The notes: generated from the sequence alone by a model not told the origin. Counted from the stretch's first letter, positions 14,690 to 58,657 are shown. The stretch: DNA of 64,000 nucleotides from Octopus bimaculoides (GCF_001194135.2 NC_068995.1:33305218-33369217), one strand, 5' to 3'. Made by a program: numbers and translations.

Positions 14690-15530
14690 TTACAGTGTCT
14701 AAATTAATTTTACATATTGGTTCATCAGTTTTATATTTTCTAATACAGATACAGCAATGTGCATCAGTTTTACTTTTTGACTTAACTTCTGATGGCCTTG
14801 TGTCCCGTCCAGAAACAGAAGCTACTTGAACTTTGTATGTTGAGTCTCGACAAGTGATCAAGACTGTTGGCGATTTGTTGTGCTTGAGAAGAGATGTCAA
14901 GCTTAGTGAAATTATAGTTGTGGCCAGTGCTAGTGACACATAAAAGAATTCAAGCATCATACATTCTGCTCTTCACTCAGAGAGAGGAGTCTATATCACC
15001 AGCAGAAGTAATGGCACCCTAAACATTTTCTGCTCTGTTCTACTACTATGCTTTCAGAATATTGGTGATAAGGTCACCTTGTTAATAGGATCAGTCACCT
15101 ATTTCTATGGAGCCTTCAAGGCATTTGTAGAAACTCATTTAAAGCTGCTCTTACCGCCACCCAACTCCTGTACATTTGTTACATAGGAAATTTCTACCAA
15201 CTCCATTTCTACATTCCAAACATGACCACTTCCTACATGGCAGTAGAGTTCTGTGTTTTTCTTGCTTAGAGTTTTGTCTTTGCTTGATTTACTTTTAGAC
15301 CTCATGATTCTAGGCACTACTTTCTGGTTTTGAACTTTCCATTTAATTATTTTACTGATTTGACTATCAGAACGAGTTGATCAGCATATGAGGTCCCATA
15401 GACAGCCAGTCTTAAACTTCCGTTATGGCTTGGAGGACCATAAATAAACAGTAAAGAATTAAGAACTGAGCTCAGATGGACTTAACCTGTGTATTAAATC
15501 TGTAAATGGATTTTCCTGAAGTAATTTCAT
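14690..15530 (-). mobile_element. Decayed RTE-clade LINE reverse transcriptase fragment
   Basis: Across frameshifts: …LLFIMVLQAITE/FKTGCLWDL/YADQLVLI (YADD-like), LES*GLKVNQAKTK, KWSCLECRNGVGRNFLC (zinc finger-like insert), RVKSRMYDA. Confidence 0.8.
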
Positions 15531-16194
15531 TAAAGGTTTCTTTTGATTATTGTTGTCTCATTAAAAGTATTTTTCAGAATTCTTCATTTCAGAAGACACT
15601 TTGAATAAAAAGCTTAGGGAAAGTATTATCATTTTATTTTGATGAATGCCAAATTAGTGAAGAAGGTACATGTTTTCTTTGCTTAAGACAATCTAACTAA
15701 CACACCAGAATCCAAAGAAACCATCAAAGATCTACATCAGCAAACCGTAAGTACAATATGTTATAAATTATTTTTCCATGAGAAAAAGAGTAGTGTAAAG
15801 TTTTTGGATATAACCTTTTTGGCAAAAGGTTTTTATGAACTTTCTATACAAGAGATCTCATATACTTTTAAGGCAGTCCTCCAGCATGGCCACAGTCAAA
15901 TGGCTGAAACAAGTAAAAGAATAAGACAATTAATGTTAGACATTTGTGCAGTGTCCACAGTGTTACAAATTATACAAAATCAAGATGGTCTAATTCCCCA
16001 GTTCAATTTCAATTCATCTATTTTGACCATATAATTACAACAATTTGCAATGCATAAACAGACAATGCAGAAAAGAAAACATATGTGGTTGAAAGGCTGT
16101 GATAATGGTCAAATTTGCCTGCAGGATATCATGGCCCTTGTGATTCCTATAACTAAAGCATGAGCAATGATTTTTTTTATTAACTGATAATCCT

Positions 16195-16402
16195 TTCTAC
16201 TGTAGACACAAGACCTGAAATTTGGGGTAGGGGCTAATCAATCACTTCAACCCCAGTTTTCAACTGGTGCTTATTTCATCAACCCCGAAATGATGAAAGG
16301 CAAAGTGTGCCTTGGCAGAATTTGAGCTCGGAACATGAAGACTGAAGAAATTCCGCCAAGCATTTTACCCAGCGTGCTAATGATGCTTCTAGCTCACCCC
16401 TT
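16195..16402 (-). mobile_element. SINE family A
   Basis: Reverse-complement match. Confidence 0.85.
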
Positions 16403-16610: not shown

Positions 16611-17062
16611 AGTTTAAGCACGCCACATAACTCCTCATAGCTTTTTTTATTTTTTGAAATTTTCAGAAAATATTTTTGAATTTGTGTTCTACGTGTGGGT
16701 ATTCATACAATTATAAAAAAAAAATTTGTAATCCTAAAAGCTCCACTCTTTTTCGAATTTAAAGTAGAGTCAAAATTTTTTGCTTAAATGCCAACAATGA
16801 ATCACCATTCCATTAAATTTGTTTAAGGGGAAAAAAACATTGAAAATCATCACTACATGTCGGAGTGACAAAGAAACAAGGGAGGTATCAGGTGATCATG
16901 AGATGTGCTGAAAACAACAGCTAAGTCGCCCTTAAATCACACACAATTTTTTGTTTTCATAATTGTATCAATTCCTGTGCGTGGAACACAAATTTGCAAA
17001 AATTTTCTGTAAATTCCAAAAAATAAAAAAAGTTATGAGGGGTTATATGGGGTGCTTAAACC
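16611..17062. mobile_element. TTAA-flanked inverted-repeat element, ~115-bp imperfect TIRs
   Basis: 16611-16728 matches the reverse complement of 16945-17062; termini ttaa|gcac…gtgc|ttaa. Confidence 0.72.
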
Positions 17063-17449
17063 TTAATTCCGCCAATTTATCATCTATACATACTATAGAA
17101 ACAAGAATTAAATACCGACTGTGGGGTTTGTGGACGAAATAAAGATTAAGATGATGATCTCATTGTTTGTATAAAATATAATATAGAAAGAAAAAAAATT
17201 ATCATTATCTTCTTGATTTTGTTTTAATAATCGACAATGAAAAATTACTATTTCTACCTTTGGTCCAAAACAACTTTTGAGAAGATAGGATACTAATTTT
17301 ACTGCATACTGTTCAATCAGCATTTAGATATCTAATTATTTGGTAAATCTTGATGGGTGTACTTATAAAAATTTACTGAAGTGTTTTGTGACATATATTA
17401 AGAAACAGAAAAAAAAAAAATGGTTAATGTTTACAATATTACCCAGAAG

Positions 17450-17970
17450 CGAAAACAAAAAAAAAATGGTGCAATGGGTGTAAAAAAAATGTGTATGAAA
17501 TGAATATGAAAATAAAAATGCGCGCAAAGCAACGGGGTGGGGAGAGGACTTTCGGAAAATTCACAAGATCGGAAAGGATTTTTCCGACAAATTTCTTTAT
17601 AACTGTAATGTATGCCGTTTGAAAGATATTTATATAAAATTTCGTTTAAAAGATATCCATTTTCCTCAAAGTTATGGGCGAAAAAATCGGAACTTCTGAA
17701 TTTTCCGAAAGTCCTCTCCCCACTCCCTCGGAAAAGATTTTACCCACAAATTTCTTTATAATCGTAATCTATGCCATATGAAAGGTATTTGTACAAAATT
17801 TCATTTAAAAAAACCAATTTTCCTAAAAGTTATGAAGGAAAAACTCGGATCTTGGAAATTTTCCGAAAGTCCTCTCCCCACCTGCGCCCCCATTGCTTTG
17901 CGCGCGTGTTTGTTTTCATATTCGTTTCATACACATTTTATTTACACCTGTTGTACTTTTTTTTTTTCGT
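17450..17970. mobile_element. Inverted-repeat element with ~110-bp TIRs and an internal ~160-bp tandem duplication
   Basis: GTGGGGAGAGGACTTTCGGAAAATT at 17537 inverted at about 17700 and 17860; internal units 17575-17735 and 17735-17880. Confidence 0.75.
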
Positions 17971-18255: not shown

Positions 18256-18418
18256 CTCGGATTTTTCGCGTGTAATCAACTACCCTGACATTAAGTGCCG
18301 CAAACCCCTGGTTTTCGTTCGGAAAAAAAAGGGTAAATTTTGATAAGTATACCCGCACGCGTTTCACTAAGAAAAAATATATACCTCGGATTTTTTGCGT
18401 GGAATCAAGTACCCTGAC
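18256..18418 (+). repeat. Two 34-bp imperfect direct repeats
   Basis: CTCGGATTTTTCGCGTGTAATCAACTACCCTGAC (18256-18289) and CTCGGATTTTTTGCGTGGAATCAAGTACCCTGAC (18385-18418). Confidence 0.85.
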
Positions 18419-18708
18419 CTCAACAATCATTATTACAGATACCTGAACATGAAAAATTCCTAAAATCGTTGCACTCTTAACTTATTGAATGTTTTGTATT
18501 TAAAAATAAAATTAAAATTTAGGTAATAGTAATAAAACTGATATTTAACAGATAATTAACGGCAATATTTTGGAATCGTCGTTGTGTAAATAAACAAAAG
18601 CATGAACACGTGTTTACGTGTATTAAAGTACAGTAAATACAGAATAATAAATAAATAGGGGAAAATATTTCTGAGAAAGTTTCTAAAACCCTTCACCGGA
18701 TGTGGATA

Positions 18709-18720
18709 GGTCACGTGACC
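18709..18720. promoter_or_regulatory. Perfect palindrome GGTCACGTGACC (E-box / CLEAR-type motif) 7 bp before the ferritin ATG
   Basis: Sequence seen directly; GTCACGTGAC is the MiT/TFE (TFEB) CLEAR consensus and also a USF site; function inferred. Confidence 0.4.
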
Positions 18721-18727
18721 AAACAGC

Positions 18728-19252
18728 ATGAACCTGAGGAAAATGTCTGCTCGACAGAATTATCATCACAATTGTGAGGAGATATTGAATGAATGCATCA
18801 ACGTATTACTCAAGTCAGCATACGTAAACCAATGCCAGGCTGCACATTATGACAGGAGTGATGTTGCTTTAAAGGGATTTCATCTCTTCTTTGAGAAATT
18901 AAACCGTCAACATCTTCACCAAGCAGACAAACTCATGGAGTACCAAAACAAACGTGGTGGACGCGTTGTTTTACAGAATATTGACGAACCCGAGATTTCG
19001 TTTTGGGACTCTGGTGCTTCTGCCATGGAATATTCACTTGTCGTTGAAAAAAACATCAACCAGCACTTTCTAAAGCTGGTTTTGTGTGCTAAAAAGAACG
19101 GAGATCCTCAACTCATTGGGTTCCTTAAGAAGATTGCCCTTGGAAAACAAGTTGAAAACATCAAGCAAATCTCTGATTACATTTCAAGATTGAACCAGTT
19201 GGGCGAAGGCCTCGGTGAATATATGTTTGATAAAGAAACACTTCAGCATTGA
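18728..19252 (+). CDS. Intronless ferritin-like protein (probable retrogene, divergent ferroxidase centre); real start may be the second ATG at 18743
   Basis: 174-aa ORF with ferritin motifs ARQNYH, DRSDVALKGF, KLMEYQNKRGGRVVLQ, EKNINQ and GEGLGEYMFDKETL; no introns, stops or frameshifts. Confidence 0.93.
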   Translation: MNLRKMSARQNYHHNCEEILNECINVLLKSAYVNQCQAAHYDRSDVALKGFHLFFEKLNRQHLHQADKLMEYQNKRGGRVVLQNIDEPEISFWDSGASAMEYSLVVEKNINQHFLKLVLCAKKNGDPQLIGFLKKIALGKQVENIKQISDYISRLNQLGEGLGEYMFDKETLQH

Positions 19253-20485
19253 GCATATTGCATTGTGTTGATGTTCTGTGGAAATAGTTCAAATATATAA
19301 TCTCAACAGAGAAATTATTATTTTGTAAGAATCTCAGCTAAAATGTATCTTCTAAAAACATGCTTATTATTAACGTAACTCCAGTATAGTTAGCTTGAAG
19401 GAAGAGGAACTCAAAAGTTTTCAAAAATCACAATAATTTAAACAGATTTAAAAGATTTTTTTCAAGGATCAAAATTTGTATTTCTTCCACGATTAAACGT
19501 TTTGTAATTTATATTTGTTATCTTAACTATTTTTTATCTTTAAACTATTTGCTGTATTCAATTCGTTAGACTCAATGTCTCGCTATGAATGGAATAATTT
19601 TTATGTTTCTTTCTAATCTTAATTGAAAATAATAGTCTGATATGATTTAGATAATTTGTTTTTTTAAAGTAATATTTGTTACACTGATAAACTATATCAT
19701 TATAAAGGTATCCTATTCCAAAGATGTTCCAACCTCGACCACCACTATCCATGTTTCTTAAGAGCAATACAACTATATTCATACCACAATCTATACGTGA
19801 TTATCTTTTATCTCGTCTCTTTTTTTCTTTTTAAATCAAAATCTTCTTCATTTCCCATCTTACCATTTTCTTTTTATTGAAAAGAACACATTGTATAGTA
19901 TAATGCAGAGTGCAACATGAAAAATAAAAGATGGAATGGTTATGGGTAGAATGCTAGGGGTCATAAGTCAACTGCATTGGAGCCAACCTGGTGCTAAACA
20001 ATGACGTTGTGACAGACTGACCCATTTTTAAATATTTTTCAGATATAACGTACATCAGACTACATTATCTGATGTGTCCCCTAAAATAAGTAATAAAAGA
20101 TAGTTGGGTTCTGATATCTAATAGCTTAATAATCTAATTATTGTGATTACTTAATAATATTGAAGATAGTAAATTGCATGCAGAAGATATTGGTTTAAAA
20201 AAAAGATGAGATGGTCACATCGGGAATGCAGGACGATCACAGAAGACTCTTAAAAAAGACCAGACAGTCTTCGTTGAAATGCTTTTAGAAAAGTGGGATG
20301 GTCACATATGGAATGCCTTCATAGAAAGATGAGCATTTTGAGTGAACTGCACATGCACATCAATGCATGTGCAAATGAATTAGTTGTGCTACTTTCCATT
20401 TTGAAATTTTTTTGGTTTCAGGTGTAGAACTACAGGATAACCTTTAGGTAGTAGGGTATGATATATATAATGTGTGTGTGTGAAA

Positions 20486-20772
20486 GCACATGGCTCAGTT
20501 AGTATCGGGCTTACAATTGTGAGGTTGTGAGTTTGATTCCCAGACTGGACTGTGTTCTTGAGCAAGACGCTTTACTTCACATTACTCCAGTTCACTCAAC
20601 AGTAGAAATGGTGCCAAGTTGTATCGATCTTGGTCTTTCCCTTGGACAACATCAGTGGTATGGAGAGGGGACACTGGTGTGTATGGACAACTACTGGTCT
20701 TCCTCAAACAACCATGCTCGAGGGGAACTTTCTAGGTGCAATACCATGGTCATTCATGACCAAAGGGGGTAT
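20486..20772 (+). mobile_element. SINE family C
   Basis: tRNA-like head GCACATGGCTCAG…GAGTTTGATTCC; end CCATGGTCATTCATGACCAAAGGGGG. Confidence 0.82.
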
Positions 20773-20774
20773 TT

Positions 20775-20830
<56 letters not shown>

Positions 20831-20844
20831 GTGCCACATAAAAG

Positions 20845-20990
20845 TATCCAGCACACTCTGTAGACTGGTTGGCATTAGGAAGGGCATCTAGCCATAGAAA
20901 CCATGCTGAATCAGACTGGAGTCTGCAGCTTGCCAGCTCTGGTCACATCATCCAACCCATGCCAGCATCACCAACAGACGTTAAATGAAT
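20845..20990 (+). mobile_element. RTE-associated 3' end fragment
   Basis: GGTTGGCATTAGGAAGGGCATC…CCCATGCCAGCAT…GACGTTAAATGA motif shared with 54094-54720. Confidence 0.75.
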
Positions 20991-21464
20991 CTTCTCCCTG
21001 ACATATGATAGATGACTCGCGCGCGCGTGTGTGTGTATATATATAATGTTACTTGGCTTTATGTTACATGTATTAGATTTAGCTGAATCAAATATTGATA
21101 GATTGTTATTTTTCACCTCATTCGGAAAATCTAAATAACTTTGTTGTTGTTTTTTTTTAATATTTATGCATTTTTTTTTTTTAAAGTTGTTTTTTTAACC
21201 CTTAAACTGGCTTTTATCAGAGATCTTTTTGTTGGAATCAGTCGTATGAAATTAAATGAAATAGAAAGCTGTTGTTCTTAAAGAAAAACTGAACCTCATC
21301 CTCCATCGATTCTGACCAGAAATAAGGAATTGTGCTGATATCATTGCTATAACTGTTTCTCAAGAAATATTCTGCTGGAAAATATTAATAGATTTACAAG
21401 TGATAATTGTTCTTAATGAAATAATTGAAAGAGGATGTACCTTCTGTTTATATTATAGGATGTC

Positions 21465-22674: not shown

Positions 22675-22689
22675 ATATATATATGCGTG

Positions 22690-22910
22690 TGTGTCTTTGT
22701 GTATGTGTTTGTCCCCACCACTGCTTAACAATTAGTGTTCATGTGTTTATGTCCCTGTAACTTAGCAGTTTGGCAAAACAGACTGATAGAATAAGTACCA
22801 AGCTTAAAAAGAAAATAAGTATTGGAGTAGATTCATTCGAGTAAAATTCCTCAAGATGGTGCCCCAGCATGGCTGTAGTCTAATGACTGAAACAAGTAAA
22901 AGATAAAAAA
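22690..22910 (+). mobile_element. SINE family B, 3' half
   Basis: Match to family B tail. Confidence 0.82.
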
Positions 22911-23854
22911 TAAATACACTTCACATATTATGCTGGTACACATGACATATTATCATATTCGATGATTGAGTTATTTTCAAGACTTTATTTGAGGGATGAA
23001 AAAAAGCCAGTTTGTAAACTATTTTCTGAATGTAAATCCTGAGACCCTGATAAATAAATGATAATAAAAAAAAATTTTTTAAACAGATTGACAGGGTGAG
23101 GGATCAGCATTGGCAGATCTGATATCAAGTAAAGTTTTCAAACACTTTGAAATATCATTGCTAACATTTGGACATGTTAAATGGAGAACAGTGAGCAGCT
23201 TTGACAAGAACATGATTGAAATTTGTCTCTTGACTGGTTTAGAAATTAAATTTTGACTAAGTAAAAAAGATAAGTAAAATATAATCTAATTATTGAATAG
23301 AGCATTGTAATTGTAAGAAAAACATCACTCACTAAGCTTGTACTTAGAGGCAGTGGAGTATCTACATTATTACACAACTCGCTTAAAATAACATCTGAAT
23401 TTCTATTAACAAACTTCCTACTGCCTATAAATGAGTATCATGTTAAATATCCTAGACAAATTGTTAAAATTATATTTTTTCCAGATTAATAACCTTTTAT
23501 TTGTGTACATCCACAGTGCTTCATCTAATTTGATCTCTAATTGTGATCATGTGTCTTATTACTGGATATGTACATGGTTTAAAAGTGAATTCAACAACTT
23601 TTATTTCTAAACTAAGAACAGTAATGTCCATATCCACTAAGCCAATAGCACATTTATGTTAAAGATAGAGTTGCAGAATTAATTCAGAGAGGGAAGAGCT
23701 GTTTTATTTCATTCAGGATCCTGTATTTCTGTATTCAAATCCTGCAAGATTAACTCTTTTGTCCTTCATTTCTGCTGAATTAGTAGAGGAGGTACAAATA
23801 ATATATCAAATCTTCAAAATAAATGGATTTTTATAGACTAATTGCATGAGGGTG

Positions 23855-24055
23855 GAGGCACATGGGAAAGTTGTTAGGGTGTAGGTCACATGATTGTATG
23901 ATTGCAGTTTTGATTCCTGGACCAGGTAATGCATTGTGTTCTTGAGCAAAACACTTCATTTCATATTGCTCCAGTCCACTCAGCTACTAAAAATGGATAA
24001 TCCTGTGATGGACTGATGTCCTGTCCAGGAGGAATATGTACACCAGAGAAACCAA
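23855..24055 (+). mobile_element. SINE family C, diverged
   Basis: GAGGCACATGGG…TTCTTGAGCAAAACACTT…CTCCAGTCCACTCAG. Confidence 0.7.
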
Positions 24056-34440: not shown

Positions 34441-34525
34441 TGCTGAAATTCAACCATAAATTCTCATTATTCTTCCTCTTTGCAAGGAAGATCGTCTCCT
34501 CAAGGGCAGATAACTTATATTAAAC

Positions 34526-58657
<24,132 letters not shown>

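Follow-up and report, generated by a model that had tools for sequence, protein, structure and literature searches.

A single-exon octopod ferritin, maintained by selection, with most of its canonical iron-handling residues replaced

The ObF1 gene of Octopus bimaculoides is a real gene, selectively maintained and not a pseudogene, whose product keeps the structural motifs of a ferritin subunit and is predicted from its residues neither to admit nor to oxidise Fe(II) in the canonical way. Our preferred reading, to which we give a probability of about 0.55, is that ObF1 arose by retrotransposition from a cytosolic ferritin gene, is specific to octopods and was then adopted in a new role. The gene lies in a stretch of 64,000 nucleotides that was analysed at its full length (hereafter the window), in which the following features are placed by counting from the first letter:

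18743 to 19252, + strand: ObF1 coding sequence, an atypical ferritin in a single exon, 169 aa plus stop, in the frame common to all orthologues
18728 to 18742, + strand: in-frame extension by five codons (MNLRK) that begins at an earlier ATG, as seen in the alignment and in the 174-aa database model
18688 to 18725, + strand: promoter-like block CCCTTCACCGGATGTGGATAGGTCACGTGACCAA, an ETS-like CCGGAT followed by the E-box palindrome GTCACGTGAC
18392 to 18742, + strand: upstream stretch lying under an RNA-run contig, to be read as a long 5' UTR, as read-through or as background
19253 to 19511, + strand: probable 3' UTR, the contigs of three probable-RNA runs ending at 19511
34502 to 34607, 40677 to 40835 and 48876 to 49382, + strand: exons of TRIP4 (ASC-1 complex), downstream of ObF1 (PF23134)

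The open reading frame runs uninterrupted from 18728 to 19252 on the + strand (174 codons plus stop), is the sole long genuine ORF of its neighbourhood, is intact in five genomes or assemblies and lies far beyond chance expectation. It matches the Pfam family Ferritin (PF00210) with E=1.8e-22 over profile positions 2-141 of 142, and its closest solved structures are invertebrate 24-mer ferritins, the best being 6lpe from Phascolosoma (E=6e-49). The original prediction of an intronless, uninterrupted ferritin ORF of 174 codons is thereby borne out, with one amendment to its start. The 174-aa form is the one held for O. bimaculoides in NCBI and UniRef; all orthologues of ObF1 (P0001, P0134, P0002), however, are 169 aa long with the N-terminus MSARQNYH, and the ATG at 18728 is absent in one sister species, an Octopus-like form (L001), so that the conserved start is the second ATG, at 18743, and the ATG at 18728 is probably not a functional start. 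Four residues precede the conserved RQNYH and nothing further lies upstream; with no N-terminal extension, a signal or targeting peptide was rejected, and the published SignalP likelihood is 0.00035 (PMC8395497 Table S1).

The protein, its class and its lost iron residues are already on record: Table S1 of Adameyko et al. 2021 (PMC8395497) gives ObF1 (XP_014786113.1) as atypical, with an IRE entry of 0, 39.9% identity to the human H chain and 11 substitutions, and lists its residues as V/G/K, L/N/Q/H/Q/E/Q and K/R/Q/H. As the window ORF has the same residues, and carries the motif KRGGRVVLQNIDEPE at positions 75-89 just as the published protein does, the window gene is ObF1. That study deals with ObF1 as a table row and a tree tip only, and among the papers of the literature library searched none cites the gene by accession; new here are the orthology, synteny, selection, intron loss, localisation of the charge shift and the candidate promoter motif. 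The atypical class was defined as ferritins without a signal peptide that have <49% identity to the human H chain or >5 replacements, counted over the channel, ferroxidase and nucleation sites, and nearly all of its members are without an IRE (PMC8395497). ObF1 belongs to it by its absent signal peptide, by identity and replacements and by its absent IRE, the class being an operational one and not a clade, with members that are independent in origin and differ in their substitutions. Comparable atypical ferritins come from a sea star (ApF1, 10 substitutions), a prawn (MnF3, 12), a box-jelly (AaF2, 10) and a sponge (HdF2, 8); the table has such degenerate ferritins for cnidarians and sponges, and the authors remark that the function of atypical ferritins 'deserves further research' (PMC8395497 and its Table S1). 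The same source records two conservative octopus paralogues, ObF2 (XP_014779712.1) and ObF3 (XP_014770938.1), of which ObF3 has an IRE (PMC8395497).

The loss of iron chemistry had been proposed from an alignment by eye, and an alignment by MAFFT of ObF1 with human FTH1 and 120 homologues reproduces the named residues exactly, the residue numbers of the 174-aa form being those of the mature human H chain. Five of the seven ferroxidase ligands are lost (E27>L, Y34>N, E61>Q, E62>H and H65>Q) and two, E107 and Q141, are kept, with which the published table agrees; the three-fold channel shows H118>V, D131>G and E134>K, E140 has become K and the carboxylates of the cavity are replaced, so that nine of the 11 scored channel, ferroxidase and E140 positions are replaced. 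By comparison, E27, E61, E62, H65, D131 and E134 are kept in 116 of the 120 homologues in the same alignment. The glutamate cluster that nucleates mineral in L chains was also said to be absent, and both the helix B alignment and the published table (PMC8395497 Table S1) have K, R, Q and H at those positions. ObF1 thus falls outside the catalytic H type both in its ferroxidase ligands and in the acidic residues of the three-fold channel (D131, E134; H118). The Argonauta orthologue differs from ObF1 in keeping E61 and in having A at 118; G131 and K134 are found in all four octopod sequences and K140 is invariant.

Substitutions and charge were surveyed by setting 216 canonical ferritins against the four octopod sequences. 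Structural motifs had been described as intact, and this stands, in that none of the four octopod sequences departs from the canonical residue at 62 of the positions that at least 80% of the canonical ferritins share. At 24 conserved positions all four share one new residue, and 18 of these residues are absent from the 216 canonical ferritins; the replacements include Q23C, E27L, Y34N, E62H, H65Q, D116K, D131G, E134K and E140K. The octopod clade retains the canonical residue at 80% of positions in the N-terminus, 75% in the AB loop and 83% in the DE turn and helix E, with the lowest retention (30-45%) in helices A, B and D, where the ferroxidase ligands sit and which form the lining of channel and cavity. 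About half of the residues of ObF1 have been rewritten: the clade is ~50% identical to all canonical ferritins, whereas these are 80-85% identical to one another across phyla, and such a difference points to a burst of substitution on the stem of the clade, followed by constraint. The octopod sequences have a pI of 6.7-7.7, whereas the canonical ferritins have a median of 5.09 and do not exceed 6.38, and the net charge of the subunit -1 to +1 against about -10; the change is mostly on helix D (+3 to +5 versus -3), which lines channel and cavity, and also on helix C.

The five-helix ferritin subunit fold is intact in an AF2 monomer model of ObF1 (pLDDT 89.6, pTM 0.84), which predicts helices at 9-37, 44-70, 91-118, 122-153 and 157-168, that is, a four-helix bundle with a short helix E, and which superposes on solved 24-mer ferritins with TM 0.93-0.96 and rmsd 1.1-1.5 Å. 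The earlier claim that the cage is kept is accordingly upheld by these pLDDT and TM values for the fold of the subunit alone.

A homology search returned two close relatives: a cluster at 94-95% identity, which holds the 174-aa ObF1, 'Soma ferritin [Octopus vulgaris]' and 'soma ferritin [Octopus sinensis]' (XP_029646262.1), and a 76% identical protein of Argonauta hians. With the Octopus-like species L001 added, orthologues come from four species besides O. bimaculoides. Those of O. vulgaris, O. sinensis and A. hians each consist of one 510-nt ORF without interruption. ObF1 lies upstream of the same TRIP4-like gene in the window, where the ORF at 48876-49382 matches PF23134 (TRIP4_3rd, E=1.8e-21), and in Argonauta, and from this shared position the two genes are orthologous. 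The suggestion that orthologues might be sought at the syntenic locus in other coleoids therefore holds for octopods, at the TRIP4 locus, but not for coleoids generally, as the matches come from octopods only. The clade gained no additional members from profile searches of 5.8 billion and 1.84 billion proteins, and the copy appears to be restricted to octopods and older than the Octopus-Argonauta split. The Argonauta locus also has tRNA or tRNA-like matches near or inside TRIP4 (L004 18948-19019, + strand, 60.5 bits, and 15006-15078, - strand).

Retention by selection, likewise predicted, is well supported. Nei-Gojobori dN/dS is 0.04-0.13 in every orthologue pair with dS > 0, neutrality is rejected at P<=1e-10 in the four orthologue pairs tested, and a dN/dS near 1 is ruled out; disabling mutations were sought in O. 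vulgaris, O. sinensis, L001 and Argonauta, and none were found. The raw ratios are too low, since synonymous sites have shifted from AT to GC and have raised dS: against O. vulgaris or O. sinensis the window has a dS of 0.52-0.54, ~5x the intergenic divergence (88-93% identity over ~20 kb), the differences are strongly biased from AT to GC, and GC3 is 0.41 in the window versus 0.56 in O. vulgaris and O. sinensis. Calibrated instead on intergenic distance, dN gives a ratio of ~0.2 (window versus O. vulgaris), and ObF1 is under clear constraint even so. Between the window and Argonauta the CDS alone aligns across 26 kb. Some 28 synonymous changes fall on the vulgaris/sinensis branch (window 18743-19252 versus L005/L006 10001-10510); GC-biased gene conversion, conversion by cDNA or a paralogue, and selection on codon usage are all possible sources of the excess dS.

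The exon layout of gastropod ferritin genes is that of vertebrate H ferritin. That canonical animal ferritin genes have introns was part of the original argument, and in the gastropods Haliotis and Patella such genes span 5-6 kb, with four coding exons and three introns, after about aa 34, 82 and 125. All three are missing from the ObF1 CDS in five species, the comparison genes here being gastropod ones and not the octopus parents. The IRE motif (C-N5-CAGWGN or CAGTG) was sought in five species over the ~500 nt that precede the ATG, and in the window over the 3' flank of ObF1 as well, and was found in neither; the Haliotis ferritin gene, serving as positive control, has an IRE 78 nt upstream of its ATG that folds as a textbook IRE, and the published call for ObF1 is also 0 (PMC8395497 Table S1). 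The joint loss of all introns and of the 5'-UTR element is the signature of a processed retrocopy, and the prediction of a retro-duplicated ferritin is to that extent supported in all species. Beyond the 3' UTR no species shows a poly(A) remnant or target-site duplications, as would be expected of an old event at a divergence where the flanks have ceased to align. A homology search with the best canonical-like match (P0006) returned no named cephalopod ferritin. Rfam was discarded as evidence on the IRE: it gives no IRE match on ObF1 at the gathering threshold or at E<=10, a result that is uninformative as Rfam 15 also misses the bona fide Haliotis IRE (L007 2923-2934) at both.

Upstream of the gene, a block with the consensus CCCTTCACCGGATGTGGrTAGGTCACGTGAyCAA is kept in all Octopus sequences, 18-55 nt before the ATG. 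Its E-box palindrome (18710-18719 in the window, 24-33 nt upstream of the ATG), which we take to be a class-B E-box of the USF/MITF-TFE/Myc-Max type, recurs 19-28 nt upstream of the Argonauta ATG (L004 9973-9982) in a flank that is otherwise unalignable. This 10-mer has a single occurrence in the 64-kb window, against none in 100 shuffled versions, and likewise a single one in the Argonauta locus of 20.5 kb. The E-box and ETS-like block is a candidate promoter element, which the retrocopy may have gained.

As to expression, the gene does not appear silent. In ten O. bimaculoides runs with a label of probable RNA, 96-100% of the words sampled from the locus are present, and in each of the four such runs whose contigs were aligned to the region ObF1 is covered by one genome-colinear contig, reaching from 18392 to 19511 in three and from 18589 to 19461 in the fourth; one must consider that this evidence consists of assembled contigs from runs whose type was guessed as RNA, in which low-depth intergenic contigs are present too. 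The colinear contig has 2-10x the depth of the flanking contigs and no splice joint within ObF1. An ATTAAA at 19492-19497, the sole poly(A)-signal hexamer downstream, is kept in Octopus and lies ~14 nt before the end of the three contigs that reach 19511, and a contig from a sister species (L003) begins only 46 nt before the ATG. Elsewhere upstream, RNA-run contigs differ from the genome by clusters of A>G changes on the + strand (16630-16669, 17029-17045, 17445-17515 and 17931), a pattern resembling A-to-I editing in some + strand transcript that lies before ObF1. Extreme RNA-run contig depth, up to ~4e5, occurs at 15670-16337, 20680-21013, 22684-23017 and 23686-24000; the dozens of apparent joints at these stretches were rejected as splice junctions, being chimeric and in TA/CA-rich repeats or low-complexity sequence.

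Under the preferred reading of an adopted octopod retrocopy, a processed ferritin mRNA would have given rise to the copy before the Octopus-Argonauta split, and a copy so made would have lost IRE control. It would then have gained an E-box/ETS promoter of its own and passed through the substitution burst that erased its iron machinery, followed by fixation in a new role and long purifying selection. As for that role, we propose tentatively, and at somewhat less than even odds, that ObF1 modulates ferritin by co-assembly. The product would still build into cages, as the strong conservation of its loop and helix-E segments suggests, and most likely into cages mixed with ObF2 and ObF3; there it would act as a non-oxidising subunit, presenting a lysine-lined channel and a de-acidified cavity face. 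Mixed shells would consequently admit and mineralise less Fe(II) per shell, and ObF1 would be an iron-independent tuner of ferritin activity, analogous to the L chain or FTHL17 by way of different substitutions. Against this, K134 in mixed channels would make ObF1 almost a poison subunit, which may be hard to square with long-term selection.

Three known systems help to place such a subunit. Firstly, the vertebrate L chain is a non-catalytic subunit with a ferritin fold, and so a model for how a dead subunit can be useful in heteropolymers. L chains keep D131/E134 and the nucleation glutamates E57, E60, E61 and E64, and the L gene has introns and an IRE; ObF1, in contrast, has a G/K channel, K/R/Q/H at the nucleation positions, no introns and no IRE, and without D131/E134 and the nucleation glutamates it is not simply L-like. 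Secondly, mammalian FTHL17 is intronless. Like ObF1 it is a ferritin paralogue that has been retained and expressed, though without ferroxidase activity, as is predicted for ObF1; it is X-linked and found in germline and ES cells. There is no orthology between them: in FTHL17 the inactivation is essentially due to E62K (plus E61D), the remaining residues of the centre being conserved (PMC7760355), whereas ObF1 has lost five of seven ligands and both carboxylates of the three-fold channel. The convergence with FTHL17 that had been suggested therefore stands only as a functional analogy, the set of substitutions being different and much larger. Thirdly, human mitochondrial ferritin, FTMT, illustrates how a ferritin copy without introns may end up as a functional gene. 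FTMT carries a mitochondrial targeting peptide. It also keeps ferroxidase activity (PMC7760355), and ObF1 has neither an N-terminal extension nor a catalytic centre.

A role unrelated to iron is possible, though we consider it doubtful: ObF1 would form a homopolymeric cage or another oligomer whose neutral-to-positive channel and cavity, with fixed Cys23, His40 and His62, serve phosphate or some other anion, a different metal (copper or zinc, for instance), nucleic acid or a protein partner. The wholesale change of charge is focused on helix D, lining channel and cavity; besides the invariant K134 and K140, residue 135 is also Lys in all four octopods; and C23, H40 and H62 are newly fixed there, C23 and H62 being absent at those positions among the 216 canonical ferritins. 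Regulation would also be independent of iron, given the missing IRE and the gene's own conserved E-box, and IRE-less, ferroxidase-dead ferritins recur in many phyla, suggesting a recurrent non-storage niche (PMC8395497). Set against these points, the net charge is about 0 and not strongly positive, and the surfaces for co-assembly with canonical subunits are also the best conserved. In its boldest form, which we regard as unlikely, octopods would have refashioned the ferritin cage to contain or scaffold a cargo different from iron (an anion, another metal or nucleic acid), the neutral or positive lining, the new Cys23, His40 and His62 and iron-independent expression from the E-box all belonging to that use; copper would be the obvious candidate cargo in a hemocyanin-based animal. 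Were this borne out, the widespread class of atypical ferritins would have its first assigned function.

It is distinctly unlikely that ObF1 is instead an ancient atypical paralogue, shared with marine invertebrates, lost elsewhere and stripped of its introns secondarily. The order of tips in the published maximum likelihood tree does set ObF1 beside the bryozoan BsF2 and not beside ObF2 or ObF3 (PMC8395497), a neighbour-joining tree made here does not place the clade reliably, and no poly(A) or target-site-duplication scar is visible. BsF2, however, keeps all ferroxidase residues and shares no derived states with ObF1 (PMC8395497), so that their grouping looks like long-branch attraction. No sequence lies between the octopod cluster, at 363-376 bits, and the single-domain canonical ferritins, at <=201 and <=182 bits in the two profile searches, the intermediate matches of 220-274 bits being longer and apparently two-domain proteins; and the absence of all three deeply conserved introns at once is most simply explained by retroposition. 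The neighbour-joining tree, which puts the clade on a long branch by Biomphalaria, Helobdella and Opisthorchis, was itself judged to show long-branch attraction and was not used.

There is little probability that ObF1 is still a storage ferritin, oxidising some iron at a residual H62/E107/Q141 site (with E61 in Argonauta) or mineralising it slowly in the manner of an L chain: two ligands, E107 and Q141, do survive, His62 might bind metal and Argonauta has E61, but E62K alone is reported to suffice to abolish the activity of FTHL17 (PMC7760355), whereas here E27, Y34, E62 and H65 are all replaced, the entry residues D131 and E134 have become Gly and Lys, and the nucleation glutamates K/R/Q/H. 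A processed pseudogene or neutrally drifting relic with an ORF open by chance, as an intronless gene without catalytic residues or IRE might suggest, is effectively refuted by selection and intact ORFs, the frame being open in five genomes or assemblies at a divergence where no flank aligns, with dN/dS of 0.04-0.13 (P<=1e-10), presence in RNA-run contigs and a conserved upstream motif.

ObF1, as a probable octopod retrocopy, offers a clean case for the ferroxidase-dead, IRE-less ferritins of many invertebrate phyla, with a history that probably runs from retrocopying through rapid change to long constraint. With it, the use of a ferritin cage without iron chemistry becomes open to experiment in a tractable animal, whose two canonical paralogues can serve as internal controls.

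Further observations concern other ferritins and the rest of the window. Two database proteins, P0054 (JGI) and P0090 (Logan), represent a ferritin lineage with an altered ferroxidase centre (K27, R62, Y141 and H140) and no relation to the octopod clade. Lingula, a sponge, an oyster, a coral and sharks have members of the ferritin family with 259-291 aa, against the usual ~170 aa (P0003, P0004, P0005, P0177, P0178 and P0180-P0185); many match both PF02915 and PF00210, they outscore single-domain ferritins, and they may be tandem fusions or annotation merges. Within the window, an ORF of 132 aa (…RPDIVVKDHEEKKCFLIDVSIPADDNV…) at 1915-2313 on the - strand has no Pfam match and, we presume, resembles the C-terminal part of invertebrate retroelement polyproteins.
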